Assembly (NCBI GenBank): GCA_002269645.1
Contig: NIVC01004086.1
Location: 1-61,135 of the forward strand
Reading direction: 5' to 3'
DNA from: Macrostomum lignano
Taxonomy: Eukaryota
DNA length: 61,135 nt
In this document: one piece after another, positions 11,715 through 45,900 of the stretch
Position numbering within the stretch: position 1 is the first letter of the stretch
How the letters are laid out: each line of letters opens with the position of its first letter
Made by a program: the position numbers and the translations under genes
The notes under the pieces: generated by a model
What the model was told of the DNA's origin: nothing
What the model saw: only the letters and a program-made list of their open reading frames with translations
Databases searched by the model: none

Positions 11715-18361
<6,647 letters not shown>

Positions 18362-22192: not shown

Positions 22193-25100
22193 TCACAATC
22201 GAGGCGCGCTTCTATCGTTGGTCAGATTGGCGACCTTCTTCAATTTGGCGCCGCGGCGAATGTCGGACAGAAGTGCGCCGCGACCTGTCGATCGCTCCGG
22301 CGCGCGCGACGGTGGCGGCGGTGGCCCCGGCGGGGGAGGCGCTGGAGGCGGTGGGGGAGGCGCTGGAGGCGGCGGGGGAGGCGCTGGAGGTGGCGGGGGA
22401 GGCGCTTGCGGAGGAGGCGGAGGAGGCTCAGGCGCCCGCGGTGGTGCCCGCGCAGTCGGAGGCTGAGGCTGCGCCCGGACGTCCCGAGGCTGCCGCGGAC
22501 TTTCCGCGGCCGCTGTCGCGACGCCGCCGCTGCGAACCCCTGCTGGCAGGCGCTTGCGCACCCGCTTGAGAAAGGACGCGACCACCGCTGTCGAGGCGGT
22601 GGAATCGGAGGCAGCGGCCGTCTCGGCCACCGGGAACTCGACCATGCAGCCGGCGAAGAAGGCGTGATCAGCGATGGCACCGAGCTCCGGTATGCTGCCG
22701 AACGGCAGGCGCTCGAAGATGAAGTTCAAGACATCCAACAGTGGCCGGTATTTTCGGCCCTTGGCTGCGAGGATCTGAAAGGGGGTCGAATGCACTCTGT
22801 GAGCATCAGCAAAATGTGCCTCATTCTGAGATTAGGCCTCTATTCAGTTGGACACCTTTATCCAGTTGGAAACCTCACTACCCAGTCGGACACCTCACTA
22901 CCCAGTCGGACACCTCACTACCCAGTCGGACACCTCACTATCCAGTTGGAAACCTCACTACCCAGTCGGACACCTCACTACCCAGTCGGACACCTCACTA
23001 CCCAGCCGGACACCTCACTATCCAGTCGGAAACCTCACTATCCAGTCGGACACCTCACTATCCAGTCGGACACCTCACTATCCAGTCGGACACCTCACTA
23101 TCCAGTCGGACACCTCACTATCCAGTCGGACACCTCACTATCCAGTCGGACACCTCACTATCCAGTCGGACACCTCACTATCCAGTCGGACACCTCACTA
23201 CCCAGTCGGACACCTCACTATCCAGTCGGACACCTCACTACCCAGTCGGACACCTCACTATCCTGTCGGAAACCTCACTACCTAGTAGGAAACCTCACTA
23301 TCCAGTCGGACACCTCACTATCCATTCGGACACCTCACTACCCAGTCGGACACCTCACTATCCAGTCGGACACCTCACTACCCAGTCGGACACCTCACTA
23401 CCCAGTCGGACACCTCACTATCCAGCCGGACACCTCACTACCCAGTAGAAAACCTCACTACCCAGCCGGACACCTCACTATCCAGCCGGACACCTCACTA
23501 TCCAGTCAAACACCTCGGACACTCGCCTGAAACTCCACCGCTGTTGGGGCTGTCGCTGTCAGCTCGAAGCCGGTTGCCATTTCGAACAGCAGGTGTCCGA
23601 GCCCAACTGAATCCGTGAGGTGGCGCCTTCGGCCACCTGCTGGCAGGAGTCGGCGCAGCTCGGGCCATCGCGGCGGCACCTGGCCCGTCAGGACACTCTC
23701 CAAGCCGCCCAGCTGGACGCCTTCGTTGCTTAGCAACACGTTGCCAGCGTGTACAAAGCCGTGAGGCCGCAGCCCGCAGCTGTGCAGGTGCAGCAGGGCC
23801 CGCAGAACTCGGCCGGACCAGGCGTGCAGCTTTCCGAGCGGAACTGGACGGCGGCGACGGGCCACCTTCGTCTGGTGCGGGTACAGCGGGTTTGTCTGCG
23901 GAGGAAGGGCGGGGTGTCTGGTGCGGGTACAGCGGGTTTGTCTGCGGAGGAAGGGCGGGGTGTCTGGTGCGGGTACAGCGGGTTTGTCTGCGGAGGAAGG
24001 GCGGGGTGTCTGGTGCGGGTACAGCGGGTTTGTCTGCGGAGGAAGGGCGGGGTGTCTGGTGCGGGTACAGCGGGTTTGTCTGCGGAGGAAGGGCGGGGTG
24101 TCTGGTGCGGGTACAGCGGGTTTGTCTGCGGAGGAAGGGCGGGGTGTCTGGTGCGGGTACAGCGGGTTTGTCTGCGGAGGAAGGGCGGGGTGTCTGGTGC
24201 GGGTACAGCGGGTTTGTCTGCGGAGGAAGGGCGGGGTGTCTGGTGCGGGTACAGCGGGTTTGTCTGCGGAGGAAGGGCGGGGCGTCTGGTGTCTGCAGAG
24301 AGCAGGTTACTCCATACCTGGCAGATGAAGTCTCGCACGCTGCCTTTCGGACAGAAGGGCACAATGTGCAGGAACCGGGAGTGCTTCTCAATCAGGTCAA
24401 GCTGGCCAAGCAGCAGGCATTCGTGCTGCAAGGAAACCGAATAGATCAGAGATTTCGATTTTGGTGAGCAGAAGAGTTAGGGTGTCACTCAATTCCTCAG
24501 GGAGGGTGTCACTCAATTCCTCAGGGAGGGTGTCACTCAATTCCTCAGGGAGGGTGTCACTCAATTCCTCAGGGAGGGTGTCACTCAATTCCTCAGGGAG
24601 GGTGTCACTCAATTCCTCAGGGAGGGTGTCACTCAATTCCTCAGGGAGGGTGTCACTCAATTCCTCAGGGAGGGTGTCACTCAATTCCTCAGGGAGGGAA
24701 TCACTCAATTCCTCGGGGAGGTTGTCACTCAATTCCTCAGGGAGGGTGTCACTCAATTCCTCAGGGAGGGTGTCACTCAATTCCTCAGGGAGGGTGTCAC
24801 TCAATTCCTCAGGGAGGGTGTCACTCAATTCCTCAGGGAGGGTGTCACTCAATTCCTCAGGGAGGGAATCACTCAATTCCTCAGGGAGGGTGTCACTCAA
24901 TTCCTCAGGGAGGGTGTCACTCAATTCCTCAGGGAGGGTGTCACTCAATTCCTCAGGGAGGGTGTCACTCAATTCCTCAGGGAGGGTGTCACTCAATTCC
25001 TCAGGGAGGGTGTCACTCAATTCCTCAGGGAGGGTGTCACTCAATTCCTCAGGGAGGGTGTCACTCAATTCCTCAGGGAGGGTGTCACTCAATTCCTCAG

Positions 25101-27620
25101 GGAGGGTGTCACTCAATTCCTCAGGGAGGGTGTCACTCAATTCCTCAGGGAGGGTGTCACTCAATTCCTCAGGGAGGGTGTCACTCAATTCCTCAGGGAG
25201 GGTGTCACTCAATTCCTCAGGGAGGGTGTCACTCAATTCCTCAGGGAGGGTGTCACTCAATTCCTCAGGGAGGGTGTCACTCAATTCCTCAGGGAGGGTG
25301 TCACTCAATTCCTCAGGGAGGGTGTCACTCAATTCCTCAGGGAGGGTGTCACTCAATTCCTCAGGGAGGGTGTCACTCAATTCCTCAGGGAGGGTGTCAC
25401 TCAATTCCTCAGGGAGGGTGTCACTCAATTCCTCAGGGAGGGTGTCACTCAATTCCTCAGGGAGGGTGTCACTCAATTCCTCAGGGAGGGTGTCACTCAA
25501 TTCCTCAGGGAGGGTGTCACTCAATTCCTCAGGGAGGGTGTCACTCAATTCCTCAGGGAGGGTGTCACTCAATTCCTCAGGGAGGGTGTCACTCAATTCC
25601 TCAGGGAGGGTGTCACTCAATTCCTCAGGGAGGGTGTCACTCAATTCCTCAGGGAGGGAATCACTCAATTCCTCGGGGAGGTTGTCACTCAATTCCTCAG
25701 GGAGGGTGTCACTCAATTCCTCAGGGAGGGTGTCACTCAATTCCTCAGGGAGGGTGTCACTCAATTCCTCAGGGAGGGTGTCACTCAATTCCTCAGGGAG
25801 GGTGTCACTCAATTCCTCAGGGAGGGAATCACTCAATTCCTCAGGGAGGGTGTCACTCAATTCCTCAGGGAGGGTGTCACTCAATTCCTCAGGGAGGGTG
25901 TCACTCAATTCCTCAGGGAGGGTGTCACTCAATTCCTCAGGGAGGGTGTCACTCAATTCCTCAGGGAGGGTGTCACTCAATTCCTCAGGGAGGGTGTCAC
26001 TCAATTCCTCAGGGAGGGTGTCACTCAATTCCTCAGGGAGGGTGTCACTCAATTCCTCAGGGAGGGTGTCACTCAATTCCTCAGGGAGGGAATCACTCAA
26101 TTCCTCGGGGAGGTTGTCACTCAATTCCTCAGGGAGGGTGTCACTCAATTCCTCAGGGAGGGTGTCACTCAATTCCTCAGGGAGGGTGTCACTCAATTCC
26201 TCAGGGAGGGTGTCACTCAATTCCTCAGGGAGGGTGTCACTCAATTCCTCAGGGAGGGTGTCACTCAATTCCTCAGGGAGTCACTCAATTGCTAAAGGAG
26301 GGTGCAGTCACTGAATTCCTCAGGGAGGGTGTCACTCTGATCAGCACTCCCAAATGAGGGTGCCGCCCATGCAGTCACCCGCAGTCCTTCCAGCCACTGC
26401 CTGACGCAGGCGAAGCTCTTCTGCTTGAGAGGCAGCGGGCAGAGGGCCGGGTCGGACACGTAGGGGCTGAGCAGCAGCAGGCAGAAGCGATCACCGCCAG
26501 CTGAAGTGACGCTGAACCAGTTCCAGGATCTTCTAGTGCCCAGCTGGCTAAGGTGGTCCTTCACTATCCACTGGCGGCCATTTCTCAAGTGAAATTGCAG
26601 CATTAGAAATGCCGAATGCCTGATCTGTTCGCTCTCCTCCTTGATGCTGGCGTTCATGATCTCCAGGGTGCCGGACGTGTCCAGGCTGCTGGACCCGTTC
26701 TCCAGCTGCGAGTATCCGCTCCGGCTGGCGGGTGGGGGGAAATTGAAAATTGATTGATTTAGGGGCGATGAACAGGAAGCTAGAAAGTGGGGAAGCTGGG
26801 TAGATAAAAGAGACATGGGAAGACAGGGGGGTGGGTAGACGGGTGGGGTGGGTAGACGGGTAGGGTGGGTAAGCAAGGAGAGGGTGGGTAGACAGGGGGG
26901 TGGGTAGACAGGGGAGGGTGGGTAGACAAGGGAGGGTGGGTAGACAGGGGAGGGTGGGTAGACAGGGGAGGGTGGGTAGACAGGGGAGGGTGGGTAGACA
27001 GGGGAGGGTGGGTAGACAAGGGAGGGTGGGTAGACAGGGGAGGTCCGGTAAACAAAAGAAACATGGGGAAGACAGGGGGAGGGTGGGTAGACACTGGAGA
27101 CTGGGGAGGGTGGGTAGACACTGGAGACAAGGGAGGGTGGGTAGACACTGGAGACAGGGGAGGGTGGGTAGACACGGAGGGTTGGGAGGGTGGGTAGACA
27201 CTGGAGACAAGGGAGGGTGGGTAGATACGGGAGGGTGGGGAGGATGGGTAGACACTGCAGACAGGGGAGGGTGGGTAGATACGGGAGGGTGGGGAGGGTG
27301 GGGAGGATGGGTATAGACACGGGAGGGTGGGGAGGGTGAGTAGACACTGGAGACAGGGGAGGGTAGGTAGATTATTAGAGCAGACAAGAAAGGCAATTGT
27401 ATTGAGTTTACTGAATCACATCAGTAAGCTTCTATGACATAGTGATAGCTTAAGACAATGAAAAGTACCAAAGTCCTATGATTTGAAATACTGAGTAAAT
27501 GGATATCAAGAACATGGATTAGGCCCAAGGTTCTTACCGATTTAATATGCACTTTTGGCATACCAAACAGATAATCAGACATAAAAGTAGAAACGCTAGT
27601 AGACCACCAATTAAAGATGC
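22193..27620 (-). CDS. Slob: Slob/PXK-family pseudokinase with predicted TM helix, Pro-rich linker and C-terminal WH2 domain (5' end incomplete)
   Basis: Exons 27620-27538, 26724-26379, 24425-24318, 23871-23527, 22774-22193, total 1464 nt in frame to the stop; a probable extra 26-nt exon at 28000-27975. Slob-like segments: [42 protein letters not shown]...[38 protein letters not shown]. Tail [18 protein letters not shown] is a WH2 motif. Confidence 0.85.
22855..23515. repeat. 20-bp minisatellite (cacctcactatccagtcgga), ~33 copies, last Slob-like intron
   Basis: Visible tandem array abutting the donor at 23526. Confidence 0.95.
23872..24290. repeat. 46-bp GC-rich minisatellite, ~9 copies, Slob-like intron
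   Basis: Unit tctggtgcgggtacagcgggtttgtctgcggaggaagggcggggtg, near-perfect copies. Confidence 0.95.
24478..26338. repeat. 24-bp minisatellite (gggagggtgtcactcaattcctca), ~77 copies, filling a 1953-bp intron
   Basis: Near-perfect array between exon ends 24425 and 26379. Source of the artefactual 623-aa and 617-aa ORFs. Confidence 0.97.
26810..27365. repeat. Variable G-rich (plus strand) minisatellite, core gggagggtgggtagaca, Slob-like intron
   Basis: Visible degenerate tandem units, C-rich on the sense strand. Confidence 0.9.
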
Positions 27621-29639
27621 CTGTAAATATTTAATATGAATAGTGAACTGATAAGTATTTTATAATGAAATTTTCAAAACTGCAAGATATTGCTATAAAA
27701 AAGTTTCTTTTTTATCATATTTTACTAGTTTTACTAATTTTACTAACTTTACTAATGACGATTAACCTGACAATATTTTTAACGACTAAAAACGATTACA
27801 TAAGATAAAAAATTACAAATTATGCTTGTAAAGTGGAGAAATCATTAAATTTGCTTTAAATAGAAAGGAAAATTTATACATGCGTCAATTATGAAAAATA
27901 TTATCGATTGAAGTAAAATTGCACAAAATTAGCGGTTAATTAAGGTTGCTTGTTCGATTTCAATCGCGACTTACCCAAAATACTGGACTCAATGTAATTC
28001 CTGCATATAACTCACTCATTTACAGAACTCTTACAGAACTATTGTGAAAATATTATAAGCCCACAACCATCTGGACGTATATTACTAATTATATTTACTT
28101 CCTATGTCAATATAGTTCTAGATAGACGCACTTTGACTCCGTGCGATTACGCTATTTTGGCACACTAAGAAAAATTATTGCAGAAAGAGTAACTTAAAAC
28201 TTGGATATGTAAACCATTCACAGAAATTAAGAGGTACAATAAAAGACAAAATATATTTCTGTCTAAACTATTAATCTTTTTCATCCTTAGATTTTTTCTG
28301 TCTAATAATTTTTTCTTCCACTGGTTTATTATTTTGTTTAAGTATTTTAAGCCGAAGAATTTAAATGTCCTCATTTTATCTCGGTGTACAAGAAAGAGGA
28401 CTTTAAACTATTTTTTTCTTACATTTATTAATAACCTATTTCAGTTTGCTTCGGCCTTTGTGTGCTCCCAACTTTAATCACAAAATACGAATAAAGTACA
28501 CGGTAACTTTATAAAACCTCCAGATGATGCACAGCGTGGATGTCCTGTACATATATATTTATATATATATTAAATGCTTAGTAAATCAGCCGGCGTATTC
28601 GCCCCCTTACTGACGACTGACTACGATCGGATACGGATAGTAGTTACCCGATGGGCTTGCAAAAAAGGTCAAACGGCCGCAACAACGAAAACTTTGCCCA
28701 TAGACTATGCCGTATACAGCGCTTATTCTGATCCATGACTACTCAAAGTAGAATAATCGACGAGAAACTACGTTTCTTAGAAAAAGTTAAGAAGGCTGGT
28801 TTTCGCCGAAAATTAGACTACGGAGATAGGAAGTTTTCATTTTTTCAACACAAACCAACACAAACATTGTTATTGATTTCGATGGGAGGCAGACCCAATG
28901 TTAATCTTTTGATATGTTGTGCCTTTCTTATGTTGATATTCATAGAGCTTTTTGTTTAGGAAATTAGAATTCTTTGTCAATCTTCTATTCTACGAATATT
29001 TCCTGTACCTAAAAATCTAAATATTTGGTTTTATGAATCTATTTTATCGTCTCTGTTACAGATTTGTTACGCAGTCAGCTAACAAGTAGGAATGACAAAA
29101 TAGATTCATAAAACCGCCGTGTCATTTTAATGGTTTTTTGGCACAGGACATGTGCAATTGTACTTAGAATAAAGAGCCAGATAAAGAGTCTAGATCATTG
29201 CCGAGCTGCGGGCCAGCTGAGAAAGGAGTGGGGAATAGATCAGAGAGAAGAGGAAAGAGGAGATGAGAGATGAGAGATGAGAGGAGAGGAGACGGGAGAG
29301 GAGAGAAAAGAGAGGAGAGGAGAGAGAGGAGAGGAGAGACAAACCATGAGCGAGCGGCTTTAAAGGGCCCAAGGGCCGGATAAGAGAGGCTTCAGGGCCG
29401 TATGTGGCCCGTGGGCCGCGGGCCGACCCCCTGTTCAGGATGCAGACCGGCTAAAGTGTCATCTAGATACTTTACTCCGCGGATGCTGCCACGAATTTGT
29501 TGTCGCAAATAGCATAAAACCAACGACCGGCACCCTGGGCGGCAATGAGAGGCATCGTCAGCTTCTGAACCGGCGTGCATCAAGTGAGTCTGGAATGGCC
29601 CTCTATTGTATCTGCACACCATTAGACAGTTGACCGCGG

Positions 29640-30496: not shown

Positions 30497-31678
30497 CTAG
30501 GCGGTGGAATGCCAATACAGAAAGCTTCTGTTCTTTTCCGACAGCAGCTCAGATCTGGGTGTCAAAACGAAAAACGATCCGGGTCTGTCTAAATTAACTT
30601 CTCTGTCTTCGATCTGCAGCGCGGCTCCCTTGTTACCGCGCGTGCCGTGGTACCCTGGCGCACTGCACAGGGTGATGCAGAGACGGTCGTGCCGCAGAGC
30701 GAAGCCTTCGTTAGCGATCTCACGTCCACGGACCAGCAGAGCGGCATTCACAGATCTCAGTGAGGAGCACAGAGCCTCCTTAGAGAAGTGATAGGAGCAG
30801 CTGCGTCCGCGCGTCACCCAGTTGAGCTTCAGCCGCTCTCCCTCCGGCACGGAGACCTCGAAGTTGTCCCGAGCTGGCGACTTCATCGGGTCCGAGCACA
30901 GCAGGTCGCACGCCAGGCCGAACTGTTGCAGCTCGAACGGCCGCTCGATCTTATTGTTCAGCAAGTCGGCGTTGGTCTCCGGCTGACCGGACGCGAACGG
31001 CTCCAGCTCGAAGCTCGGCGACACTCCGCCGTGGCAGCACAGCAGCTTCCCGCCTACGATGGCGGCCAGCGGTAGCCACTGGAAGCAGCGGAGGAAGCCG
31101 ACAAGCACCGAGGTGCCGCTGTTGGCACCGAAGCGGCCAATCAACTCGTCCTTGAAGCCGTAGTGACTGCATTTGCTGGCGCACTCGGAGCTGCCGCGGA
31201 GCAGCACGACCGAGTCTGGGTACATCAGCATCAGGCTCAGCAGCAGAACAATCACCTCCAGAGAGAACTTGCCCTTGTTCACGTAGTCGCCCAGAAACAG
31301 GAACTTGGCCTGAGGCGGCTGGCCCAGCTGGTCAAAGAAGCGCAGCAGGTCGTGGAACTGGCCATGAAGGTCGCCGACAATGTTGATGGGCGAGTCCGTT
31401 TGTACACAGACGCTGGTGCTGCTGCTCAGGTACTTGATCGCCATGTGGCACACGATGAGGCAGTCCTGTGCGGTCAGCTCTGGGTGCACCGAGTAGTCAT
31501 AGTTGGGCGCCTGGAAGCTGAGCAGCCGCTTCACCAGCTCCGCTAAGTCAGCATGGTCCATGACAACAGCAGAGGCGTTGCTTCTATTTTCTAGCATTGG
31601 TGCCTGAGTGGCGGAACTCTCGGCGCTCTGCATTTTGGCGCAACCAGGCGTGCAAGCCTGTGCGTCTGCCGCTGCCAT
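30497..31678 (-). CDS. PP1-like PPP-family phosphatase homolog, copy 1 (393 aa), predicted catalytically impaired
   Basis: Intronless. PINIVGDLHGQFHDLLRFF, KFLFLGDYVNKGKFSLEVIVLLL, LLRGSSEC, FQWLPLAAIVGGKLLCCHGGVSP, GLACDLLCSDP, LCSAPGY. Confidence 0.9.
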   Translation of the reverse strand: MAAADAQACTPGCAKMQSAESSATQAPMLENRSNASAVVMDHADLAELVKRLLSFQAPNYDYSVHPELTAQDCLIVCHMAIKYLSSSTSVCVQTDSPINIVGDLHGQFHDLLRFFDQLGQPPQAKFLFLGDYVNKGKFSLEVIVLLLSLMLMYPDSVVLLRGSSECASKCSHYGFKDELIGRFGANSGTSVLVGFLRCFQWLPLAAIVGGKLLCCHGGVSPSFELEPFASGQPETNADLLNNKIERPFELQQFGLACDLLCSDPMKSPARDNFEVSVPEGERLKLNWVTRGRSCSYHFSKEALCSSLRSVNAALLVRGREIANEGFALRHDRLCITLCSAPGYHGTRGNKGAALQIEDREVNLDRPGSFFVLTPRSELLSEKNRSFLYWHSTA

Positions 31679-32266
31679 CTTAGTGATAATTGGACTGACT
31701 TCTGATATTCAGCTAATAGCTGGTTCTGAATGAGTTCAACGAAAACCAATGGCCACTGGTGCCAATGTCTATGGCCAATCCTTCGTCAGTTGCAAGCAAG
31801 TGCACAAATCGTTTATTTGCACCAGTGCGAGTGAAGGTTCCGTGATCTGGAGCGTCAATCTGGCATATAACTATTTACGGAGTAACTTTTAGACCCCTTT
31901 TGGCCCCGCCGAATAAGTCTATGGTCCAATATAAAAGACGTTTCTTTGTCCCGGCCAAATAAACGATCCAAATAAATAAGTCAAACGAATGAGCCACAAG
32001 AAAGTACTCAAAGAAATACCAAGGACCACTGTGGTACCACTACTACTACAGTGGTCCTTGAGAAATACATAGAAGCAACAGATTATAATGTTTTAGAAAA
32101 GCGAGCAGTTGTTAACCAGTTTTTTGGCTTGACAGTTAAAAGTGAGTCAATGGGTCGTAACAGATCAACTCAATCAAAGTAGACAATCACCACGCACAAC
32201 TCCACATTGACCCCCCCCCAAATCACAGAACTCACCAGTTGTCGTGGACATCACTACCAATCGCAA

Positions 32267-32599
32267 TCACATCTTCCGAGCAGAGTTTCTCTTCGGACGT
32301 CGGCTCTCATTGAATTCCCCGGTCCTTCCAGAGGCTCCATGGGTTTCCGCAGTGTTTGAACAAGTGTTGTTCAGTTTCAGTATTGCAGCATGCTGAAAAT
32401 ATTCCTTCAATGTAGAAGCGCCATAGCAATCACCACGTTAATTTCGGATCTCTAAGATAAAGCACTTAAGAACGTAGTTGAGATCGCGCTTGCTCAAACT
32501 CGGATAGTCGGTTGCGGGTGCCAATGGCAAGTCACTTTAGACAGCTTCGACTTCAGCAAGACTAAGTAATTCAAAGCTGACGCTATCGACATCACTCAT
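32267..32599 (-). pseudogene. Decayed ZMYM/QRICH1/Crypton-related (DUF3504-adjacent) fragment
   Basis: Translates MSDVDSVSFELLSLAEVEAV*SDLPLAPATDYPSLSKRDLNYVLKCFILEIRN*RGDCYGASTLKEYF.... The LNY-L--F--EIR---G--Y pattern resembles ZMYM-type/Crypton-derived proteins (recalled, not searched). Two in-frame stops. Confidence 0.5.
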
Positions 32600-33389
32600 G
32601 CAGCAAATTAGTCGAAAATGTCACAGAGAAGGTTTAGTAGAGATAGAGACAACTACTCATTCTTAACTACCCAACACAGTCGTTTTTGTGAACGGCATCA
32701 AATCAAAATTTCTCTATGGTTAAATGTACAGTGTTAATATGGCCAAACGGGGTATAAATATATTATTTCCGTTTATTTTTGTCTTTGGTCTGAAGCATAA
32801 GCTTCGGACTCGCATCCAGGCCTCGGTTTCGCCTCGGCCAAGAGACGATTCCTCTGCTTTTGCTTCAGACCAAAAAAATAAATAAGTATAAACGGAAAAA
32901 ACTTTCATTTACCACACTCTATGCATGTGCTCGAGTTTTCTTGATTGCCATTATCATTTTGATGTGTTGTTCGATCAACAGCACTAGGAAAGTACCATTA
33001 AATAAGAACTTATTCTCTGTACTCAGAAAATCTAAAGTAGAGACCAACCGACCCCCAACAACTAGAATTGCATTGTCAGCTTTTCAGACTATTCTGTAAA
33101 CCCATTTTCTCCGATGAGGCTTGGTCCGCAGTTTAACATTCGCTATATAGTCTGTAAAAGGTCGAAAGCCCTAGCTGAACAACGTCAACACATTACATCT
33201 AAACGACATGATTACATAAAATATGCCGACGGCAGCTAAAAGACCAAAGTTAAAATTAACCAACTTACATGTTTTTTGCAATGCTGCTCGATCCCTAAGG
33301 CTTCTTGTGCTGTACTGGCATCAATCATGCCATAAAGTCACCAGGCTGATGTACAAACAGAAAAAAAAGATGTACAAGTAAGTGCCGAA

Positions 33390-33625
33390 GGTTGCATGAA
33401 GGAAGGCTGCATGAAGGAAGGCTGCATGAAGGAAGGCTGCATGAAGGAAGGCTGCATGAAGGAATTGGTTGCATGAAGGAAGGCTGCATGAAGGAAGGCT
33501 GCATGAAGGAAGGCTGCATGAAGGAAGGCTGCATGAAGGAAGGCTGCATGAAGGAAGGCTGCATGAAGGAAGGCTGCATGAAGGAAGGCTGCATGAAGGA
33601 AGGCTGCATGAAGGAAGGCTGCATG
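33390..33625. repeat. 15-bp minisatellite (gcatgaaggaaggct), ~15 copies, unit 1 spacer
   Basis: Visible tandem array, duplicated at 37289-37524. Confidence 0.95.
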
Positions 33626-34380
33626 CCAAATATAAGTCACCGAAGGCTGCTGCATACCGAAAACTACCTGCCCAAGGTTTCTGGTTGAGAAGCATGCTCG
33701 TACCCTATGGCAAAAAACTTGGCCATATGTACATTCATCTTCACCTGCATGAACGCGAATACACGAAGGCGAACGCGAACGCGAAGACAAGCCGCTAGCT
33801 ATTGAATCCACTCAGACCCCAGTACCAATCGTGTCCTTGATTTGAAGGAGAGCTCCGACTACTTGGTGGTGTCGCCAACTAAGCTTAAGAGAATTTCTCG
33901 AATTAAGATACATGTAGAGGATCACGCTTTCACACCAGAAATGAATTAGCTTGATTCGGAACACTATCTATGATGACCGGTTTGCCTAGTCGGCTTGTAC
34001 GGCGTGGGCTAACCGGCGTTTGCGATTGGCTAGGAGGGGTTGTTTGGCTCCACCCGTGGGGGTGGGTTTGCGGCGCTGGGGTGGGTGGTGTGTTTTGTGC
34101 CTTTTAGGCCTCACTTTGAGCTGAGATCGCTCGTTCTCGCGGCGTTGAATCGAACAACTCAAAAGACTAAGGTTACCAAGTTTTTTCAACCAGCTGAAAA
34201 GTTTTTCGACAACAATGACCAAGTCCATGCATTGAAAACAGAATCCTTAGTCTTTTTTTGGACCGTGTGATTGAGTTGCGTAAATCTTTAATCTCTTCCA
34301 GTAACTTAAAATGTAATGCGAATTCAAAATAATTTCTTTTTCAATACAAACAGAAATAAATGCAATAACGGAGTGTCGCT

Positions 34381-35574
34381 TCATTTCTTTTCACCGGCAA
34401 TCTCGCCAGCACTCTGCCAGAGATGCTGCAGGTGCTTCGCCGCAGCTTTGACTGGGCACAGAACGAAGAACGCGCCCGGCTTCCTCGTGTTGATGTTGCT
34501 GCTGTCAATCTGCAGCACGGAGGCGTTGTTCTTTTTCTGGCCCAGGTAGTCGGTGGAGCTGATTAGGGCGACGCAGCGGCGGTCCAAAAGCACGTTGAAG
34601 CCATCAGGGCCGTGACACTTGCCCCGAATCAGTAGAGACAAGTTTAGAATCCTTAGCACTTCCGACAGAGCCTCCTTAGAGAAGTGATAGGAGCAGCTGC
34701 GTCCGCGCGTCACCCAGTTGAGCTTCAGCCGCTCTCCCTCCGGCACGGAGACCTCGAAGTTGTCCCGAGCTGGCGACTTCATCGGGTCCGAGCACAGCAG
34801 GTCGCACGCCAGGCCGAACTGTTGCAGCTCGAACGGCCGCTCGATCTTATTGTTCAGCAAGTCGGCGTTGGTCTCCGGCTGACCGGACGCGAACGGCTCC
34901 AGCTCGAAGCTCGGCGACACTCCGCCGTGGCAGCACAGCAGCTTCCCGCCTACGATGGCGGCCAGCGGTAGCCACTGGAAGCAGCGGAGGAAGCCGACAA
35001 GCACCGAGGTGCCGCTGTTGGCACCGAAGCGGCCAATCAACTCGTCCTTGAAGCCGTAGTGACTGCATTTGCTGGCGCACTCGGAGCTGCCGCGGAGCAG
35101 CACGACCGAGTCTGGGTACATCAGCATCAGGCTCAGCAGCAGAACAATCACCTCCAGAGAGAACTTGCCCTTGTTCACGTAGTCGCCCAGAAACAGGAAC
35201 TTGGCCTGAGGCGGCTGGCCCAGCTGGTCAAAGAAGCGCAGCAGGTCGTGGAACTGGCCATGAAGGTCGCCGACAATGTTGATGGGCGAGTCCGTTTGTA
35301 CACAGACGCTGGTGCTGCTGCTCAGGTACTTGATCGCCATGTGGCACACGATGAGGCAGTCCTGTGCGGTCAGCTCTGGGTGCACCGAGTAGTCATCGTT
35401 TGGCGCCTGGAAGCTGAGCAGCCGCTTCACCAGCTCCGCTAAGTCAGCATGGTCCATGACAACAGCAGAGGCGTTGCTTCTATTTTCTAGCATTGGTGCC
35501 TGAGTGGCGGAACTCTCGGCGCTCTGCATTTTGGCGCAACCAGGCGTGCAAGCCTGTGCGTCTGCCGCTGCCAT
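34381..35574 (-). CDS. PP1-like PPP homolog, copy 2 (397 aa): chimera with the copy-1 N-terminus and copy-3 C-terminus
   Basis: Same degenerate PPP motifs. N-terminus identical to copy 1 and C-terminus (SEVLRILNL...AGEKK) identical to copy 3. Confidence 0.9.
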   Translation of the reverse strand: MAAADAQACTPGCAKMQSAESSATQAPMLENRSNASAVVMDHADLAELVKRLLSFQAPNDDYSVHPELTAQDCLIVCHMAIKYLSSSTSVCVQTDSPINIVGDLHGQFHDLLRFFDQLGQPPQAKFLFLGDYVNKGKFSLEVIVLLLSLMLMYPDSVVLLRGSSECASKCSHYGFKDELIGRFGANSGTSVLVGFLRCFQWLPLAAIVGGKLLCCHGGVSPSFELEPFASGQPETNADLLNNKIERPFELQQFGLACDLLCSDPMKSPARDNFEVSVPEGERLKLNWVTRGRSCSYHFSKEALSEVLRILNLSLLIRGKCHGPDGFNVLLDRRCVALISSTDYLGQKKNNASVLQIDSSNINTRKPGAFFVLCPVKAAAKHLQHLWQSAGEIAGEKK

Positions 35575-36165
35575 CTTAGTGATAATTGGACTGACTTCTG
35601 ATATTCAGCTAATAGCTGGTTCTGAATGAGTTCAACGAAAACCAATGGCCACTGGTGCCAATGTCTATGGCCAATCCTTCGTCAGTTGCAAGCAAGTGCA
35701 CAAATCGTTTATTTGCACCAGTGCGAGTGAAGGTTCCGTGATCTGGAGCGTCAATCTGGCATATAACTATTTACGGAGTAACTTTTAGACCCCTTTTGGC
35801 CCCGCCGAATAAGTCTATGGTCCAATATAAAAGACGTTTCTTTGTCCCGGCCAAATAAACGATCCAAATAAATAAGTCAAACGAATGAGCCACAAGAAAG
35901 TACTCAAAGAAATACCAAGGACCACTGTGGTACCACTACTACTACAGTGGTCCTTGAGAAATACATAGAAGCAACAGATTATAATGTTTTAGAAAAGCGA
36001 GCAGTTGTTAACCAGTTTTTTGGCTTGACAGTTAAAAGTGAGTCAATGGGTCGTAACAGATCAACTCAATCAAAGTAGACAATCACCACGCACAACTCCA
36101 CATTGACCCCCCCCCCCCAAATCACAGAACTCACCAGTTGTCGTGGACATCACTACCAATCGCAA

Positions 36166-36498
36166 TCACATCTTCCGAGCAGAGTTTCTCTTCGGACGTC
36201 GGCTCTCATTGAATTCCCCGGTCCTTCCAGAGGCTCCATGGGTTTCCGCAGTGTTTGAACAAGTGTTGTTCAGTTTCAGTATTGCAGCATGCTGAAAATA
36301 TTCCTTCAATGTAGAAGCGCCATAGCAATCACCACGTTAATTTCGGATCTCTAAGATAAAGCACTTAAGAACGTAGTTGAGATCGCGCTTGCTCAAACTC
36401 GGATAGTCGGTTGCGGGTGCCAATGGCAAGTCACTTTAGACAGCTTCGACTTCAGCAAGACTAAGTAATTCAAAGCTGACGCTATCGACATCACTCAT
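36166..36498 (-). pseudogene. Second copy of the ZMYM/Crypton-like fragment
   Basis: Duplicate of 32267-32599 inside the second 3.9-kb unit. Confidence 0.5.
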
Positions 36499-37288
36499 GC
36501 AGCAAATTAGTCGAAAATGTCACAGAGAAGGTTTAGTAGAGATAGAGACAACTACTCATTCTTAACTACCCAACACAGTCGTTTTTGTGAACGGCATCAA
36601 ATCAAAATTTCTCTATGGTTAAATGTACAGTGTTAATATGGCCAAACGGGGTATAAATATATTATTTCCGTTTATTTTTGTCTTTGGTCTGAAGCATAAG
36701 CTTCGGACTCGCATCCAGGCCTCGGTTTCGCCTCGGCCAAGAGACGATTCCTCTGCTTTTGCTTCAGACCAAAAAAATAAATAAGTATAAACGGAAAAAA
36801 CTTTCATTTACCACACTCTATGCATGTGCTCGAGTTTTCTTGATTGCCATTATCATTTTGATGTGTTGTTCGATCAACAGCACTAGGAAAGTACCATTAA
36901 ATAAGAACTTATTCTCTGTACTCAGAAAATCTAAAGTAGAGACCAACCGACCCCCAACAACTAGAATTGCATTGTCAGCTTTTCAGACTATTCTGTAAAC
37001 CCATTTTCTCCGATGAGGCTTGGTCCGCAGTTTAACATTCGCTATATAGTCTGTAAAAGGTCGAAAGCCCTAGCTGAACAACGTCAACACATTACATCTA
37101 AACGACATGATTACATAAAATATGCCGACGGCAGCTAAAAGACCAAAGTTAAAATTAACCAACTTACATGTTTTTTGCAATGCTGCTCGATCCCTAAGGC
37201 TTCTTGTGCTGTACTGGCATCAATCATGCCATAAAGTCACCAGGCTGATGTACAAACAGAAAAAAAAGATGTACAAGTAAGTGCCGAA

Positions 37289-37524
37289 GGTTGCATGAAG
37301 GAAGGCTGCATGAAGGAAGGCTGCATGAAGGAAGGCTGCATGAAGGAAGGCTGCATGAAGGAATTGGTTGCATGAAGGAAGGCTGCATGAAGGAAGGCTG
37401 CATGAAGGAAGGCTGCATGAAGGAAGGCTGCATGAAGGAAGGCTGCATGAAGGAAGGCTGCATGAAGGAAGGCTGCATGAAGGAAGGCTGCATGAAGGAA
37501 GGCTGCATGAAGGAAGGCTGCATG
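37289..37524. repeat. 15-bp minisatellite, unit 2 spacer
   Basis: Duplicate of 33390-33625, including the same internal gaattggttg variant. Confidence 0.95.
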
Positions 37525-38278
37525 CCAAATATAAGTCACCGAAGGCTGCTGCATACCGAAAACTACCTGCCCAAGGTTTCTGGTTGAGAAGCATGCTCGT
37601 ACCCTATGGCAAAAAACTTGGCCATATGTACATTCATCTTCACCTGCATGAACGCGAATACACGAAGGCGAACGCGAACGCGAAGACAAGCCGCTAGCTA
37701 TTGAATCCACTCAGACCCAGTACCAATCGTGTCCTTGATTTGAAGGAGAGCTCCGACTACTTGGTGGTGTCGCCAACTAAGCTTAAGAGAATTTCTCGAA
37801 TTAAGATACATGTAGAGGATCACGCTTTCACACCAGAAATGAATTAGCTTGATTCGGAACACTATCTATGATGACCGGTTTGCCTAGTCGGCTTGTACGG
37901 CGTGGGCTAACCGGCGTTTGCGATTGGCTAGGAGGGGTTGTTTGGCTCCACCCGTGGGGGTGGGTTTGCGGCGCTGGGGTGGGTGGTGTGTTTTGTGCCT
38001 TTTAGGCCTCACTTTGAGCTGAGATCGCTCGTTCTCGCGGCGTTGAATCGAACAACTCAAAAGACTAAGGTTACCAAGTTTTTTCAACCAGCTGAAAAGT
38101 TTTTCGACAACAATGACCAAGTCCATGCATTGAAAACAGAATCCTTAGTCTTTTTTTGGACCGTGTGATTGAGTTGCGTAAATCTTTAATCTCTTCCAGT
38201 AACTTAAAATGTAATGCGAATTCAAAATAATTTCTTTTTCAATACAAACAGAAATAAATGCAATAACGGAGTGTCGCT

Positions 38279-39454
38279 TCATTTCTTTTCACCGGCAATC
38301 TCGCCAGCACTCTGCCAGAGATGCTGCAGGTGCTTCGCCGCAGCTTTGACTGGGCACAGAACGAAGAACGCGCCCGGCTTCCTCGTGTTGATGTTGCTGC
38401 TGTCAATCTGCAGCACGGAGGCGTTGTTCTTTTTCTGGCCCAGGTAGTCGGTGGAGCTGATTAGGGCGACGCAGCGGCGGTCCAAAAGCACGTTGAAGCC
38501 ATCAGGGCCGTGACACTTGCCCCGAATCAGTAGAGACAAGTTTAGAATCCTTAGCACTTCCGACAGAGCCTCCTTAGAGAAGTGATAGGAGCAGCTGCGT
38601 CCGCGCGTCACCCAGTTGAGCTTCAGCCGCTCTCCCTCCGGCACGGAGACCTCGAAGTTGTCCCGAGCTGGCGACTTCATCGGGTCCGAGCACAGCAGGT
38701 CGCACGCCAGGCCGAACTGTTGCAGCTCGAACGGCCGCTCGATCTTGTTCAGCAAGTCGGCGTTGGTCTCCGGCTGACCGGACGCGAACGGCTCCAGCTC
38801 GAAGCTCGGCGACACTCCGCCGTGGCAGCACAGCAGCTTCCCGCCTACGATGGCGGCCAGCGGTAGCCACTGGAAGCAGCGGAGGAAGCCGACAAACACC
38901 GAGGTGCCGCTGTTGGCACCGAAGCGGCCAATCAACTCGTCCTTGAAGCCGTAGTGACTGCATTTGCTGGCGCACTCGGAGCTGCCGCGGAGCAGCACGA
39001 CCGAGTCTGGGTACATCAGCATCAGGCTCAGCAGCAGAACAATCACCTCCAGAGAGAACTTGCCCTTGTTCACGTAGTCGCCCAGAAACAGGAACTTGGC
39101 CTGAGGCGGCTGGCCCAGCTGGTCAAAGAAGCGCAGCAGGTCGTGGAACTGGCCATGAAGGTCGCCGACAATGTTGATGGGCGAGTCCGTTTGTACACAG
39201 ACGCTGGTGCTGCTGCTCAGGTACTTGATCGCCATGTGGCACACGATGAGGCAGTCCTGTGCGGTCAGCTCTGGGTGCACCGAGTAGTCATCGTTTGGCG
39301 CCTGGAAGCTGAGCAGCCGCTTCACCAACTCCGCTAAGTCAATGGTGCAATCAGGAGGAACGTCGACACCGAGCGACACTGTGCTGCTTTTCCTCGGCAT
39401 CGGTTCTTCGGATTTACCAGAGGCGTCGTTCTCGGAACACTTGTCGGAGTCCAT
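38279..39454 (-). CDS. PP1-like PPP homolog, copy 3 (391 aa from the first ATG, MDSDKCSEND...)
   Basis: Same core with a distinct N-terminus. The first ATG is at 39454 (the ORF track start at 39589 is TTG). Core differs from copies 1/2 by L>F and a 3-bp deletion (LLNKIE). Confidence 0.9.
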   Translation of the reverse strand: MDSDKCSENDASGKSEEPMPRKSSTVSLGVDVPPDCTIDLAELVKRLLSFQAPNDDYSVHPELTAQDCLIVCHMAIKYLSSSTSVCVQTDSPINIVGDLHGQFHDLLRFFDQLGQPPQAKFLFLGDYVNKGKFSLEVIVLLLSLMLMYPDSVVLLRGSSECASKCSHYGFKDELIGRFGANSGTSVFVGFLRCFQWLPLAAIVGGKLLCCHGGVSPSFELEPFASGQPETNADLLNKIERPFELQQFGLACDLLCSDPMKSPARDNFEVSVPEGERLKLNWVTRGRSCSYHFSKEALSEVLRILNLSLLIRGKCHGPDGFNVLLDRRCVALISSTDYLGQKKNNASVLQIDSSNINTRKPGAFFVLCPVKAAAKHLQHLWQSAGEIAGEKK

Positions 39455-39837
39455 TCGCGATGGCTTGTCAATGTTGGTTATATAGCAATGCTGTTGACGT
39501 ATCTGGCTAAGTGACGTTTGCTCAGTTGCAATAGTAGGTTCTGTATTTGCTGTCACCTTATCAATGCTTTTTTGGCAGTTGATCCACAAATAAAAGTTTT
39601 CTGTCTATGGCTAGTGGATAATACGCTCGCTCGTAGTTATATAGATTGAATCAGACCATATACGATTGAGAAATCTTTCGACTTGATACCAGGGTATGTA
39701 TAGGATGTTGATCAAGCTCTCGGGGTTTTGGAGGATGTTCATTTGACTCTAAGTGTTCGCAAATATATATAGTGCGTCAAATAGCGTACATGGAGCTTTA
39801 ACTTGAACTGCTTTTCACTCTGCTATTAGTCTCTGCA

Positions 39838-41521: not shown

Positions 41522-42960
41522 TGGGATCTAGAGTTGTCTTGAGATGGGATATCGAGTTTGTCTGAGATGGGATATCGAGTTTTTCTGAGATGGGATATCG
41601 AGTTGTCTGAGATGGGATATCGAGTTTTTCTGAGATGGGATATCGAGTTGTCTGAGATGGGATATCGAGTTGTCTGAGATGGGATATCGAGTTGTCTTGA
41701 GATGGGATATCGAGTTGTCTGAGATGGGATATCGAGTTTTTCTGAGATGGGATATCGAGTTGTCTGAGATGGGATATCGAGTTGTCTGAGATGGGATATC
41801 GAGTTGTCTTGAGATGGGATATCGAGTTGTCTTGAGATGGGATATCGAGTTTGTCTGAGATGGGATATCGAGTTTGTCTAGGGGATGGGATATCGAGTTT
41901 GTCTAGGGGATGGGATATCGAGTTTGTCTAGGGGATGGGATATCGAGTTTGTCTGAGATGGGATATCGAGTTGTCTTGAGATGGGATATCGAGTTTGTCT
42001 GAGATGGGATATCGAGTTTGTCTAGGGGATGGGATATCGAGTTTGTCTGAGATGGGATATCGAGTTTGTCTGAGATGGGATATCGAGTTTGTCTGAGATG
42101 GGATATCGAGTTTGTCTGAGATGGGATATCGAGTTTGTCTAGGGGATGGGATATCGAGTTTGTCTAGGGGATGGGATATCGAGTTTTTCTGAGATGGGAT
42201 ATCGAGTTGTCTGAGATGGGATATCGAGTTGTCTGAGATGGGATATCGAGTTGTCTTGAGATGGGATATCGAGTTGTCTTGAGATGGGATATCGAGTTTG
42301 TCTGAGATGGGATATCGAGTTTGTCTAGGGGATGGGATATCGAGTTTGTCTAGGGGATGGGATATCGAGTTTGTCTAGGGGATGGGATATCGAGTTTGTC
42401 TGAGATGGGATATCGAGTTGTCTTGAGATGGGATATCGAGTTTGTCTGAGATGGGATATCGAGTTTGTCTAGGGGATGGGATATCGAGTTTGTCTGAGAT
42501 GGGATATCGAGTTTGTCTGAGATGGGATATCGAGTTTGTCTGAGATGGGATATCGAGTTTGTCTGAGATGGGATATCGAGTTTGTCTAGGGATGGGATAT
42601 CGAGTTTGTCTAGGGGATGGGATATCGAGTTTGTCTGAGATGGGATATCGAGTTTGTCTGAGATGGGATATCGAGTTTGTCTGAGATGGGATATCGAGTT
42701 TGTCTGAGATGGGATATCGAGTTGTCTTGAGATGGGATATCCAGTTTGTCTGAGATGGGATATCGAGTTTTTCTGAGATGGGATATCGAGTTTTTCTGAG
42801 ATGGGATATCGAGTTGTTTTGAGATGGGATTTCGAGTTTGTCTGAGATGGGATATCGAGTTGTCTTGGGGATGGGATATCGAGTTGTCTTGAGATGGGAT
42901 ATCGAGTTTTTCTGAGATGGGATATCGAGTTTTTCTGAGATGGGATATCGAGTTGTCTTG
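41522..42960. repeat. 22-24-bp minisatellite (gagatgggatatcgagtttgtct), ~62 copies, just downstream of the RTK stop
   Basis: Visible array ending 38 bp from the RTK stop codon. Confidence 0.95.
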
Positions 42961-42997: not shown

Positions 42998-45900
42998 TCA
43001 CGGAAGGTCGGTGTGCTCGTAGCACCTCTCGAGTCCGTCCAGCCGGGCCAGGATGCTTTCGAAGCTGGGCCGATCGCGCGACTCCCAGGCCCAGCAGTCG
43101 CGCATGAGGCCGTAGAGGCCCTCGCCGGCGAGCACCGGCTGCGGATTGACGCCGCCGGCCTCCAGGTACGGCAGCACCCCGTTCGGCGACACGCCGGGGT
43201 ACGGGGTCTCGCCTTTGGAGAATATCTCGTAGAGGAGGATGCCGTAGGCCCAGCTGCAATTCAAGGAGGCTTGCTAGGCGTTGAATGGAACGATTTTAAA
43301 CTGCTTTGAGCAGTGGAGTTGGCAAGTTTTAATGGATTCGATAAGAGGATTTCAAGGATTCGACAAGAGGATTTTACGGATTTTTGAGATGGGAATATCA
43401 GGGATTTGAGATTGGGATTACATGGATTTGAGATGGGGTTTTATGGAGTTGAGATGGGATTTCATGGATTTTGAGATGGGGATTTATGGAGTTGAGATGG
43501 GATTACATGGATTTGAGATGGGGTTTTATGGAGTTGAGATGGGATTTCATGGATTTTGAGATAGGGATTTCATGGAATTTGAGATTGGAACTTAGAGATA
43601 TAGTATATTTGGATTTCATAGAGTTGAGAGGGGACTTCATGGATTTTGAGATGGGATCATAAAGGGTTCGAGTAGGGGAAACCAGATTTAGGAGAATTGA
43701 ACGTGAATAGAAGCGAAGAAACTCGTTGAACTTTGAAACTAGAAAAACAAGCCCCAACGTTCTGCAGTGACGCACCGGAATAGGATTCAAATATTTTTAC
43801 TAAGTGCATACGCAAGGTCAAAGAGCTGAAATGGGGCAAGGAGCAAGCAAATTTACAGCAGCTTTTGGGGGTGCAGCAGTGCACGCAGGATCAGATTCCC
43901 TGTTTAGGACCGGAGGGAAGGGGCGGGGAGTTATTTATACCCCCCTTCACTTGTCCCTTCAGCCAGGCCAGCAGTAGCTGAAAAGGCTTTCGCGCACTTT
44001 TCAAGTTTTGAGGCCAGCAGCGGGGCTTTTAAAGGCTGCTCTGTGAAAAAGCATTCCCCCAACCAATAAAGCGCGCAAGGTTGGCCTGGGAATTGCTGCT
44101 GTTTTGCTTCTCAAAATTCGTCCTTTATCCCACCGTTGGGATCAGGAATCGCCTCGCTGTTATTGTGTGAGCGAGGCCATTGAGCAATCATAAATTTTAC
44201 TTTCACCGGCGCGTGAACAACTCTCAAAGCTAAGCCAGTTGCAATTAATAAAATTCAACCGGTAGGTTAGGTAAAAAATCATCCCAAAACGCCCGGCAGG
44301 TAAGCAAGAACTCACTCAATGCGCTGCATCCATCAGCACAAAGGACTTTCCACGCGCGCAACAAAGAGAGGAACTATATTATAGGAGCCTTGTTCTCTTC
44401 CACCTCTCCCGCCCGCCTCCCCGTGCTACCCGCGTCCCTAAGCCACGACTCACTCACGTGGAATCACGTGATCCGATCTGGATTTCTATGAATGCCACGC
44501 GGTAAAAAAACCTGCAACGCACACACTGTAGAGAGGGGGGATATTTTACGGTATACCGCCGCCGCCGCGCTGTGCTTACAAAACTGGCGGTGAAGTGAAG
44601 ATCTCATGGCGCCCCCCGACCGCGTGGCGGTTCCGCGCAGGCCAGTTGTGGAGGGGCGAGCTGAGCAATGAAGTCGCAGCTGCACTGCTATGTTATTACG
44701 CTATTGCATTGACTGTCTGGCGGTAAAGATTTATGCACAGGCAAAGGTTTCTGCCATTCTATAATTCCGATTGTGTGGCCGGGGAATAAAAGGGAGGAGT
44801 AGCAGCAGGAGGAGAATGCCGAAGAATGGCGAACTCCGCTATTCTCACCGTCAGCCTTTTCACGCGCTGCTAGCAAACGGAGCTAGAAAATCAGTTATTA
44901 ATGACAATCTATAGCGGAATTCCAACAACACTTCCCGGTTCTTTCAATCCCCTCCTAACGCCGAGAAACTGGATCAGGATTAGCTCAATTTTGATCGCTG
45001 GGAGATTTATCAGATCGTCACCTTCCCGGGCGATTTAGGCGGGGTGTCTGTCAGGAGCAAAATGAGCTGCTGCTGCTGCTACTAGGGGAGGGGAGCAGAG
45101 AGACAAAGAGACTCAAAGCCCAGCTTATTGGTCAATCGCGGGCCGAGAATAGGGCAGCAATTTAATTATAATTAATTGCCTTCTTAGTCCGGGTGAAGGG
45201 CCTGACTTTGCCGCAGCCGCTCCGCTGCCGACCGCCACAGCGACGGGCTGAACTGAGCAAACTTGAGAAGGGTGGAGTCCCGCAACTCGGGGGGGGGGAA
45301 CGGTGTGGACATGCATAATTTATGGCTGCTGGAGCGCCTCCCGTTTAGACACTAATTGGCGGACGGAGACAAACGTGCCGTTTTGAGTAATAACTCCTGA
45401 ACTGGGCTGTTTAGTCAGCATCCCTCACTTCATCTGAGCCTTCTAGCAACAATGAAAAACACTTTTAAATGCAGTTTATTGAAATTTAAATACCAGACTA
45501 AAATGGAATAGGTGTGTGAAGTGTGTGAATGGATTCAAGGAACTGGTGACCACGATAGGTTCTCGAAATTCACGTTGTGAGATACCGGTTGACTCTAGGG
45601 ATTCACGGTTTGAGATACCGGTTGACTCGAGGGATTCACGGTTTGAGATACCGGTTGACTCAAGGGATTCACGGTTTGAGATACTGGTTGATTTAAGGGA
45701 TTCATGGTTTGAGATACCGGTTGACTCGAGGGATTCACGGTTTGAGATACTGGTTGACTCGAGGGATTCACGGTTTGAGATACCGGTTGACTCAAGGGAT
45801 TCCCGGTTTGAGATACCGGTTGATTTAAGGGATTCATGGTTTGAGATACCGGTTGACTCGAGGGATTCACGGTTTGAGATACCGGTTGACTCAAGGGATT

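Follow-up and report, generated by a model that had tools for sequence, protein, structure and literature searches.

Pseudophosphatases are rare in the PPP family of protein phosphatases. PfPPP8 was described in 2023 as the first experimentally characterised PPP-type pseudophosphatase; it is essential, the recombinant protein is without phosphatase activity, and a role as a phospho-substrate trap was proposed (PMC10317984). In this study, we analysed three tandem PP1-like genes on the minus strand of contig NIVC01004086.1 of Macrostomum lignano (assembly Mlig_3_7). The entire contig of 61,135 bp is the window analysed here. Like PfPPP8 and its apicomplexan homologues, the trio combines a PPP-fold domain with a substituted GDxxDRG motif. 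However, PfPPP8, a large protein from a protist, has an independent origin, altered motif spacing, and one changed motif (GNLINRG), whereas the trio encodes compact PP1-like domains with three changed motifs (GDxVDRG, GNHE, and RxH) and has very close active paralogs. Judging from the sequences, we propose that the trio is an independent, PP1-derived animal example of the PPP-type pseudophosphatases that are already known. Our literature search found no report of a characterised PP1-derived pseudophosphatase in an animal.

Other PPP proteins share some of these features. For instance, the kinetoplastid-specific PPPs and PP2B-like proteins were predicted to be inactive from sequence in the TriTryp phosphatome (PMC2175518). 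They resemble the trio in lineage-specific expansion, long branches, and catalytic-residue substitutions. However, they are found in protists, belong to other PPP subfamilies, and are without the tandem-conversion architecture of the trio. In plants, a Brassica protein named "PP7 inactive homolog" (P0054; P and L numbers are our handles for proteins and loci) has exactly the same LLRGSSE string as the trio. Unlike the trio, P0054 is PP7-derived, is about 620 amino acids (aa) long, carries D92N, D95G, and R221K, and keeps H248 (residues are numbered as in human PP1 alpha, and the reference sequence was verified at 13 landmark residues), and we regard the likeness in LLRGSSE as convergent. In addition, P0050, P0052, and P0056 are like P0054 at N124 and H125. 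Meanwhile, GDYVNKG, the form of the GDxVDRG motif seen in the trio, was found with all other catalytic motifs intact in P0023 and P0026, two unnamed PPPs from environmental assemblies. The motif changes in the Brassica proteins (P0050-P0056) and in P0023 and P0026 are convergent recurrences.

Two further systems concern the gene structure and the possible site of action. The intronless PPP retrogenes of Drosophila (PpY-55A, PpN58A, PpD5/6, and related genes) are mostly male-specific and keep the residues needed for activity (PMC3137614). The M. lignano clade that includes the trio is likewise a lineage-specific intronless PP1-type expansion followed by tandem duplication, but one of its branches has lost catalytic residues. 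In M. lignano itself, RNA815_7008 is a divergent PP1-like, testis-specific gene, and its RNA interference (RNAi) leads to aberrant sperm (PMC4490696). RNA815_7008 is a different gene from the trio: its N-terminal sequence, compared via a partial sequence, is unrelated.

A preliminary description of this stretch had reported three intact PP1-like open reading frames (ORFs) of 391-397 aa that have lost key catalytic residues. We found the three ORFs, at 393, 397, and 391 aa (copies 1, 2, and 3; table 1), and each motif string quoted there was present in them. All three ORFs matched PF00149 (Metallophos) with E values of 3e-24 to 6e-27, and their closest solved structures are PP1 alpha/gamma (E ~1e-47), which places them at the fold level in the PPP / calcineurin-like metallophosphoesterase superfamily. 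D64, H66, D92, H173, D208, R221, and Y272 are unchanged in all three copies, and D95N, R96K, N124S, H125S, and W206C are common to all of them. H248 is replaced by R in copy 1 (CGT) and by K in copies 2 and 3 (AAG). At the motif level, GDLHG (the GDxHG motif) and HGG are retained; GDYVNKG, LRGSSE, RGRE or RGKC, and DLLCSDP stand in place of the canonical motifs.

These changes concern the active site. The M1 ligands D64, H66, and D92 are retained together with H173. However, two of the four M2 ligands (N124 and H248) are gone, as are the general acid H125 and D95, its partner, and R96 is now K. In total, five of the ten key catalytic residues are lost in the trio. Motifs 2 and 3 are changed in every copy, with N124, H248, and H125 all replaced, so that none of the copies has the make-up of a catalytically competent PPP. 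Mutagenesis of PP1 and lambda phosphatase has shown that single substitutions at these positions lower activity by orders of magnitude, and, from PPP enzymology, the combination of losses in the trio should abolish hydrolysis. Among 211 PPP relatives covering all ten key positions in two database searches, 196 were fully canonical, and the residue combination of the trio was found only in the M. lignano proteins P0001-P0003. On these comparisons, the residue pattern can be regarded as far from chance.

GC-rich ORFs in AT-rich spacers and the tandem, intronless layout would also suit a trypanosomatid array; this origin was dismissed since the best protein hits are from M. lignano and the sequence is an M. 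lignano contig. The nearest proteins are all from M. lignano, and the first of them, BOX15_Mlig015950, shares 99% identity with copy 3. The paralog groups are P0004 (Mlig013621), P0005 (Mlig022352), P0006 (Mlig023621), P0008 (Mlig030637), and P0082 (Mlig015896). Outside M. lignano, identity by BLASTP is at most ~36%, and a scan of 1.84 billion representative proteins gave no nearer relative. The clade so far appears to be known only from M. lignano. Within it, the four closest paralogs (P0004, P0005, P0006, and P0082; 45-60% identity) keep all ten canonical residues, and the active paralogs have the motifs GDY(I/V)DRG, LRGNHE, RGHQ, and DLLWADP. In addition, the trio and these paralogs have three clade-specific insertions in common, located after HGG, after DLLW(A/S)DP, and before the last strand. 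Since close paralogs with the same insertions keep the catalytic residues, the loss of catalysis is confined to the Mlig015950 lineage. The preliminary description had also counted SAPGY and the G of RG(HQ) among the deviations. Both are present in the catalytically intact P0004-P0006, and thus they are clade traits and not signs of decay. As a separate observation, the region just upstream of active P0005 contains a protein kinase gene (L001 = NIVC01001167.1, 1-2159).

Self-comparison of the contig showed how the three copies are related. Positions 30769-35456 and 34665-39349 are 99.7% identical (5 mismatches and 4 gaps in 4.69 kb), and the end points of the 3.9-kb tandem unit fall within the gene core. 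This core of ~790 bp is common to all three copies at 98.7-100% identity (98.7% over 792 bp). Outside the core, there are two types of each end, which we call A and B. The N-terminal 43 codons are shared by copies 1 and 2, and the C-terminal 90-95 codons are shared by copies 2 and 3. Copy 2 equals copy 1 over the first 303 codons, with one amino-acid difference, and has the C-terminus of copy 3. The succession of an A-A gene, an A-head/B-tail hybrid, and a B-B gene, together with the end points in the core, thus points to unequal crossing-over between the cores of neighbouring genes. The trio therefore consists of two old tandem paralogs (A, copy 1; B, copy 3) and one recent unequal-crossover hybrid (copy 2). 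The three ORFs that had been reported as a trio are real, but they are not three independent copies. The reciprocal type, with a B head and an A tail, exists as UniProt protein P0003 and may be the reciprocal product of the crossover; a genomic DNA lookup had no contig encoding P0003 on record. The two spacers are near-identical (table 1), and each contains one 15-bp minisatellite (GAAGGCTGCATGAAG) of ~16 copies (33387-33625 and 37286-37524), which generates repeat ORFs of 109-157 aa on both strands that are not genes.

Meanwhile, the core and the ends of the genes have had different histories. Between A and B, the proportion of synonymous differences (pS) is 0.77 in the N-terminal segment and 0.66 in the C-terminal segment, both saturated, whereas synonymous divergence (dS) in the core is 0.016. 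Thus, A and B are old paralogs, and their core was homogenised by gene conversion. GC content at third codon positions (GC3) is 0.86-0.87 in the core, 0.72-0.78 in the active paralogs, and 0.53-0.73 in the terminal segments, in a background GC content of 0.41-0.45; the high GC3 of the core fits GC-biased conversion. We also found a collinear sister locus, L005 (NIVC01001283.1, 10001-15242), with two genes only, B-B and then A-A. Its short-range flanks are 98.0-98.4% identical to those of the window by mismatch count, and longer gapped blocks are 94-97% identical. P0004 and P0006 are also present at three near-identical loci each. Such multiplicity of loci fits the hidden polyploidy and the redundancy that have been reported for the assembly. 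In this hidden polyploid genome, the locus is a compact case of unequal crossing-over combined with gene conversion restricted to the core.

Table 1. Features of the PP1-like trio on contig NIVC01004086.1
Feature	Positions	Strand	Basis
Copy 1 (type A-A), 393 aa, intronless	30497-31678	-	ORF listing, Pfam PF00149; NCBI-annotated 393-aa product
Copy 1 motifs	GDYVNKG 31271-31291; LRGSSE 31184-31201; RGRE 30719-30730	-	Codon positions
Copy 2 (hybrid: type A N-terminus, type B C-terminus), 397 aa	34381-35574	-	ORF listing, Pfam PF00149
Copy 2 motifs	GDYVNKG 35167-35187; LRGSSE 35080-35097; RGKC 34615-34626	-	Codon positions
Copy 3 (type B-B), 391 aa from ATG at 39454	38279-39454	-	ORF listing, Pfam PF00149
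Copy 3 motifs	GDYVNKG 39062-39082; LRGSSE 38975-38992; RGKC 38513-38524	-	Codon positions
Tandem duplication block, period 3896-3899 bp	30769-39349		Self-comparison
Catalytic core, copy 1	30769-31560	-	Self-comparison
Catalytic core, copy 2	34665-35456	-	Self-comparison
Catalytic core, copy 3	38563-39349	-	Self-comparison
Spacer 1, ~2.7 kb, 43% GC, co-duplicated with gene	31679-34380		Self-comparison
Spacer 2, near-identical to spacer 1	35575-38278		Self-comparison

To examine the fold, copy 2 was modelled with AlphaFold2 from a 32-sequence alignment. The mean predicted local distance difference test score (pLDDT) is 82 and the predicted TM-score (pTM) is 0.81; most of the core is above 90 in pLDDT, and residues 1-39 and 378-397 are disordered. 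Foldseek aligned the model to PP1 structures with an E value of 3e-33, a TM-score of up to 0.94 on the target, and a root-mean-square deviation of ~2 Å. The PP1 fold is predicted to be intact, and structural modelling, which had been proposed as a check on the trio, gave a confident PP1 fold at the fold level. A phosphatase fold that is kept with its catalytic residues replaced is one hallmark of PPP-type pseudophosphatases, and the trio, with its predicted fold, shows it.

We give a probability of about 60% to the reading that the trio encodes expressed non-catalytic PP1-fold proteins, namely a lineage-specific pair of PP1-derived pseudophosphatases plus a hybrid, that bind a phospho-ligand or a partner. 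The absence of activity, the expression, and the binding role are what we infer from the sequences. In this reading, the proteins would fold like PP1 and could not hydrolyse phospho-serine or phospho-threonine. They would act by binding a phosphorylated ligand or a partner, in a pocket that is still positively charged or on the PP1-like surface. R221 and K96 are the basic phosphate-contacting residues that are kept, and a basic K or R stands at position 248 in both old paralogs. A and B differ at both ends, in the disordered tail at the N-terminus and in the C-terminal third of the domain, and these variants could confer different partners or locations. The non-catalytic role would be that of a phospho-ligand trap or scaffold, for which the divergent tails and C-terminal third supply the specificity. 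A more elaborate form of this proposal can be put forward tentatively: the dead core is kept identical by conversion, the tails and the C-terminal third, which is the PP1 regulator-binding face, diverge, and the copies might be adaptors or traps with different partners in which K or R fills the M2 site, perhaps acting in sperm. A possible germline role is an analogy with RNA815_7008 and the fly retrogenes.

The best surviving alternative is that the three genes are non-functional relics, that is, unexpressed or useless copies whose frames are open through their youth or through repair by conversion among polyploid copies. We consider this unlikely. Conversion is clearly active in the core, with its low dS beside saturated flanks, and the genome is highly redundant, with 180 Mb in duplicated blocks that are at least 95% identical (PMC5730564). 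However, every known copy of the lineage is dead, so conversion cannot import function. In total, five intact ORFs are known in this catalytically dead lineage, three in the window and two in L005, and they argue as independent cases against the relic explanation.

The comparison of the window with L005 bears on the same question. Coding sequence shows 8 differences in 2355 positions (0.34%), and the flanking and spacer sequence shows 85 in 6025 (1.41%; p = 6.6e-6). Synonymous and non-synonymous changes number 6 and 4, respectively. Furthermore, the type-specific N- and C-terminal segments, which are untouched by conversion between A and B, have 1 difference in 801 (p = 5e-4). For these ends, the sister locus is the sole donor; yet they are open, they differ far less than the 1.4% of the flanks, and between A and B their proportion of nonsynonymous differences (pN) is lower than the saturated pS. 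Both coding indels are of 3 bp, whereas the 26 noncoding indels are of mixed length, and the triplet indels too speak against relics.

Older comparisons give a similar picture. The ratio of nonsynonymous to synonymous divergence (omega, dN/dS) is 0.35-0.46 between the trio core and P0004 or P0005, and 0.26 when the two active paralogs are compared with each other. In the C-terminal segment, A and B have pN 0.455, pS 0.659, and NG86 omega ~0.44, with frames open and H248 absent in both; for this segment, omega is 0.08 in active P0004 versus P0005, and pN is 0.228 in the active paralogs. The C-termini of A and B group as weak sisters on long branches, with 57% bootstrap. Read most simply, the loss of H248 predates the split of A and B, and since then both genes have stayed open under a relaxed but real constraint. 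We also considered that the C-terminus of A came from the P0005 lineage and that of B from the P0004 lineage, with independent losses of H248. This candidate was not supported, as the segment tree puts A and B as weak sisters.

Several points weigh against maintained non-catalytic proteins, and some of them favor relics. First, the amino-acid sequences evolve faster than those of the active paralogs: beyond the higher pN of the C-terminal segment, in relative-rate tests, unique changes were in excess 1.1- to 2.5-fold in the core and 1.5- to 7.5-fold in the C-terminus, with only some of the tests significant. Second, gene conversion could account for part of the low coding divergence of the sister loci, dS is saturated in the old comparisons and makes the omega values rough, and the change counts in the recent comparison (6 and 4) are small. 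Third, with a bootstrap of only 57% for the A and B C-termini, H248 may have been lost late and independently. Fourth, the structural comparison is one of overall fold, and compensating metal ligands are conceivable. Fifth, copy 3 is unannotated and copy 2 only partly annotated on the contig. Finally, no expression, protein, or activity data for the trio genes were found in the literature searched. Nevertheless, the intact frames, dN/dS below 1, the low coding divergence, and the triplet indels argue for maintained proteins and not for decaying pseudogenes, as had been proposed earlier, with conversion and saturation as confounding factors.

With regard to expression, searches of full texts and of the PMC7336406 and PMC5730564 supplements did not find the gene ID. 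In addition, k-mers of the trio were absent from the candidate transcripts of PMC4490696, which are partial transcript sequences. Meanwhile, the gene models of the assembly were derived from RNA-seq-guided transcripts (PMC5730564), and these models cover copy 1, both genes of L005, and copy 2 in part. These transcript-derived models give indirect support to transcription.

Another explanation, already raised in the preliminary description, is that the trio would act as a decoy or sponge, its dead fold competing with PP1 for RVxF-type partners among the canonical PP1 regulatory subunits. The overall PP1 fold is retained, and in the RVxF pocket L243, F293, and R261 are conserved and I169L and Y255F are conservative. 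However, four residues of this pocket are non-canonical (D242 to A/S, F257 to L/V, L289 to R/K, and C291 to G), and the SILK and acidic-groove residues are altered too. These changes occur across the clade, active paralogs included, and the residues were already altered in its common ancestor, so the whole clade had already left the canonical PP1 interactome. Furthermore, PF16891 (PP1 N-terminal domain), which is listed for the canonical PP1 hits P0011 and P0012, was not detected in the trio. By its RVxF pocket and the missing PF16891, the trio does not have the features of a canonical PP1 catalytic subunit (PPP1C), and the decoy role, weakened in this way, is improbable.

It is still less probable that the trio are working enzymes, either hydrolases (phosphatases or others) whose site has been rebuilt, for example around one metal at M1 while Ser/Lys take over, or enzymes with a changed substrate: the retained D64, H66, D92, H173, R221, Y272, and D208, the positive charge kept or added by R96K and H248K/R, and the occurrence of GDYVNKG alone in the otherwise intact P0023 and P0026 would allow it, but with N124, H125, D95, and H248 all gone at once, the acid catalyst and half of the M2 site are missing, single substitutions there are already costly, and LRGSSE is also carried by plant proteins named "PP7 inactive homolog".

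The absence of introns had been taken as a sign of retrogene origin. The trio ORFs are continuous, with ~1.2 kb of coding sequence without introns, which is unusual in M. lignano, whose genes have a mean of 4.9 introns (PMC5730564, Table 3). However, introns are likewise missing from active P0004 and P0006, at three loci each, and P0005 is interrupted once, at residue 290, by 2.7 kb that could be an intron or an insertion. Thus, intronlessness is older than the catalytic loss; it does not mark the trio as retrogenes tied to the loss of activity. If there was retroposition, it would have taken place at the base of the clade, before the trio arose. We found no A-run after the stop codon of copy 1, and no intron-bearing parent gene was identified. 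The coding sequences are intronless as expected of retrogenes, but the copies themselves did not arise by retroposition: they are in tandem, and a 2.7-kb noncoding spacer was copied together with the gene, as in DNA-level duplication.

The annotation of Mlig015950-type genes needs correction, with one gene missed, one truncated, and one database model fused. In the NCBI annotation of this contig, copy 1 is full, copy 2 is a 319-aa product from an internal Met (34381-35340), and copy 3 is uncalled. The ORF of copy 3 was listed as 38279-39589, and we adopted the ATG at 39454, which is the start in the near-identical NCBI protein P0001 (BOX15_Mlig015950g1; 99.5% identity). Copy 3 has a 3-bp in-frame deletion (NN to N). 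In addition, UniProt A0A1I8H985 (627 aa) is a B-B gene fused to part of an A-A gene. These annotation problems concern proteins P0235 and P0236.

The close active paralogs, with 45-60% identity and the same insertions and gene structure, make this clade a natural experiment on the PP1 fold minus catalysis. Simple restoration mutants (N95D, K96R, S124N, S125H, and K/R248H) are conceivable, and RNAi and transgenesis work in M. lignano. The value of the finding depends on demonstrating expression and lack of activity.

A functional link between the trio and the other large ORFs of the window was sought, and none was found: these are a HIPK-like exon, a WH2-domain gene, and otherwise tandem-repeat artefacts. 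The 380-aa ORF at 11748-12890 on the plus strand encodes the N-terminal three quarters of a protein kinase domain, is closest to HIPK2/HIPK3 (E 8e-112), and is probably one exon of a HIPK-like gene. Directly downstream of copy 1 is the annotated, multi-exon WH2-domain gene (510 aa, 22193-28019, minus strand). A long repeat of 24-bp period within its coding region (~24479-26337) accounts for long ORFs on both strands that are spurious and for meaningless Pfam hits.

Two more tandem arrays lie on the other side of the trio. Upstream of copy 3, a 23-bp minisatellite (TGGGATATCGAGTTTGTCTGAGA) at 41522-42958 has ~62 copies with 93% matches and a higher-order period of 447 bp, and the same minisatellite is present in L005. 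Meanwhile, an array with a 33-bp period at 45568-46411 is visible as a ladder of BLAST offsets against L005. This array underlies ORFs of 267-312 aa on both strands and spurious Colipase-like and TfoX Pfam hits.

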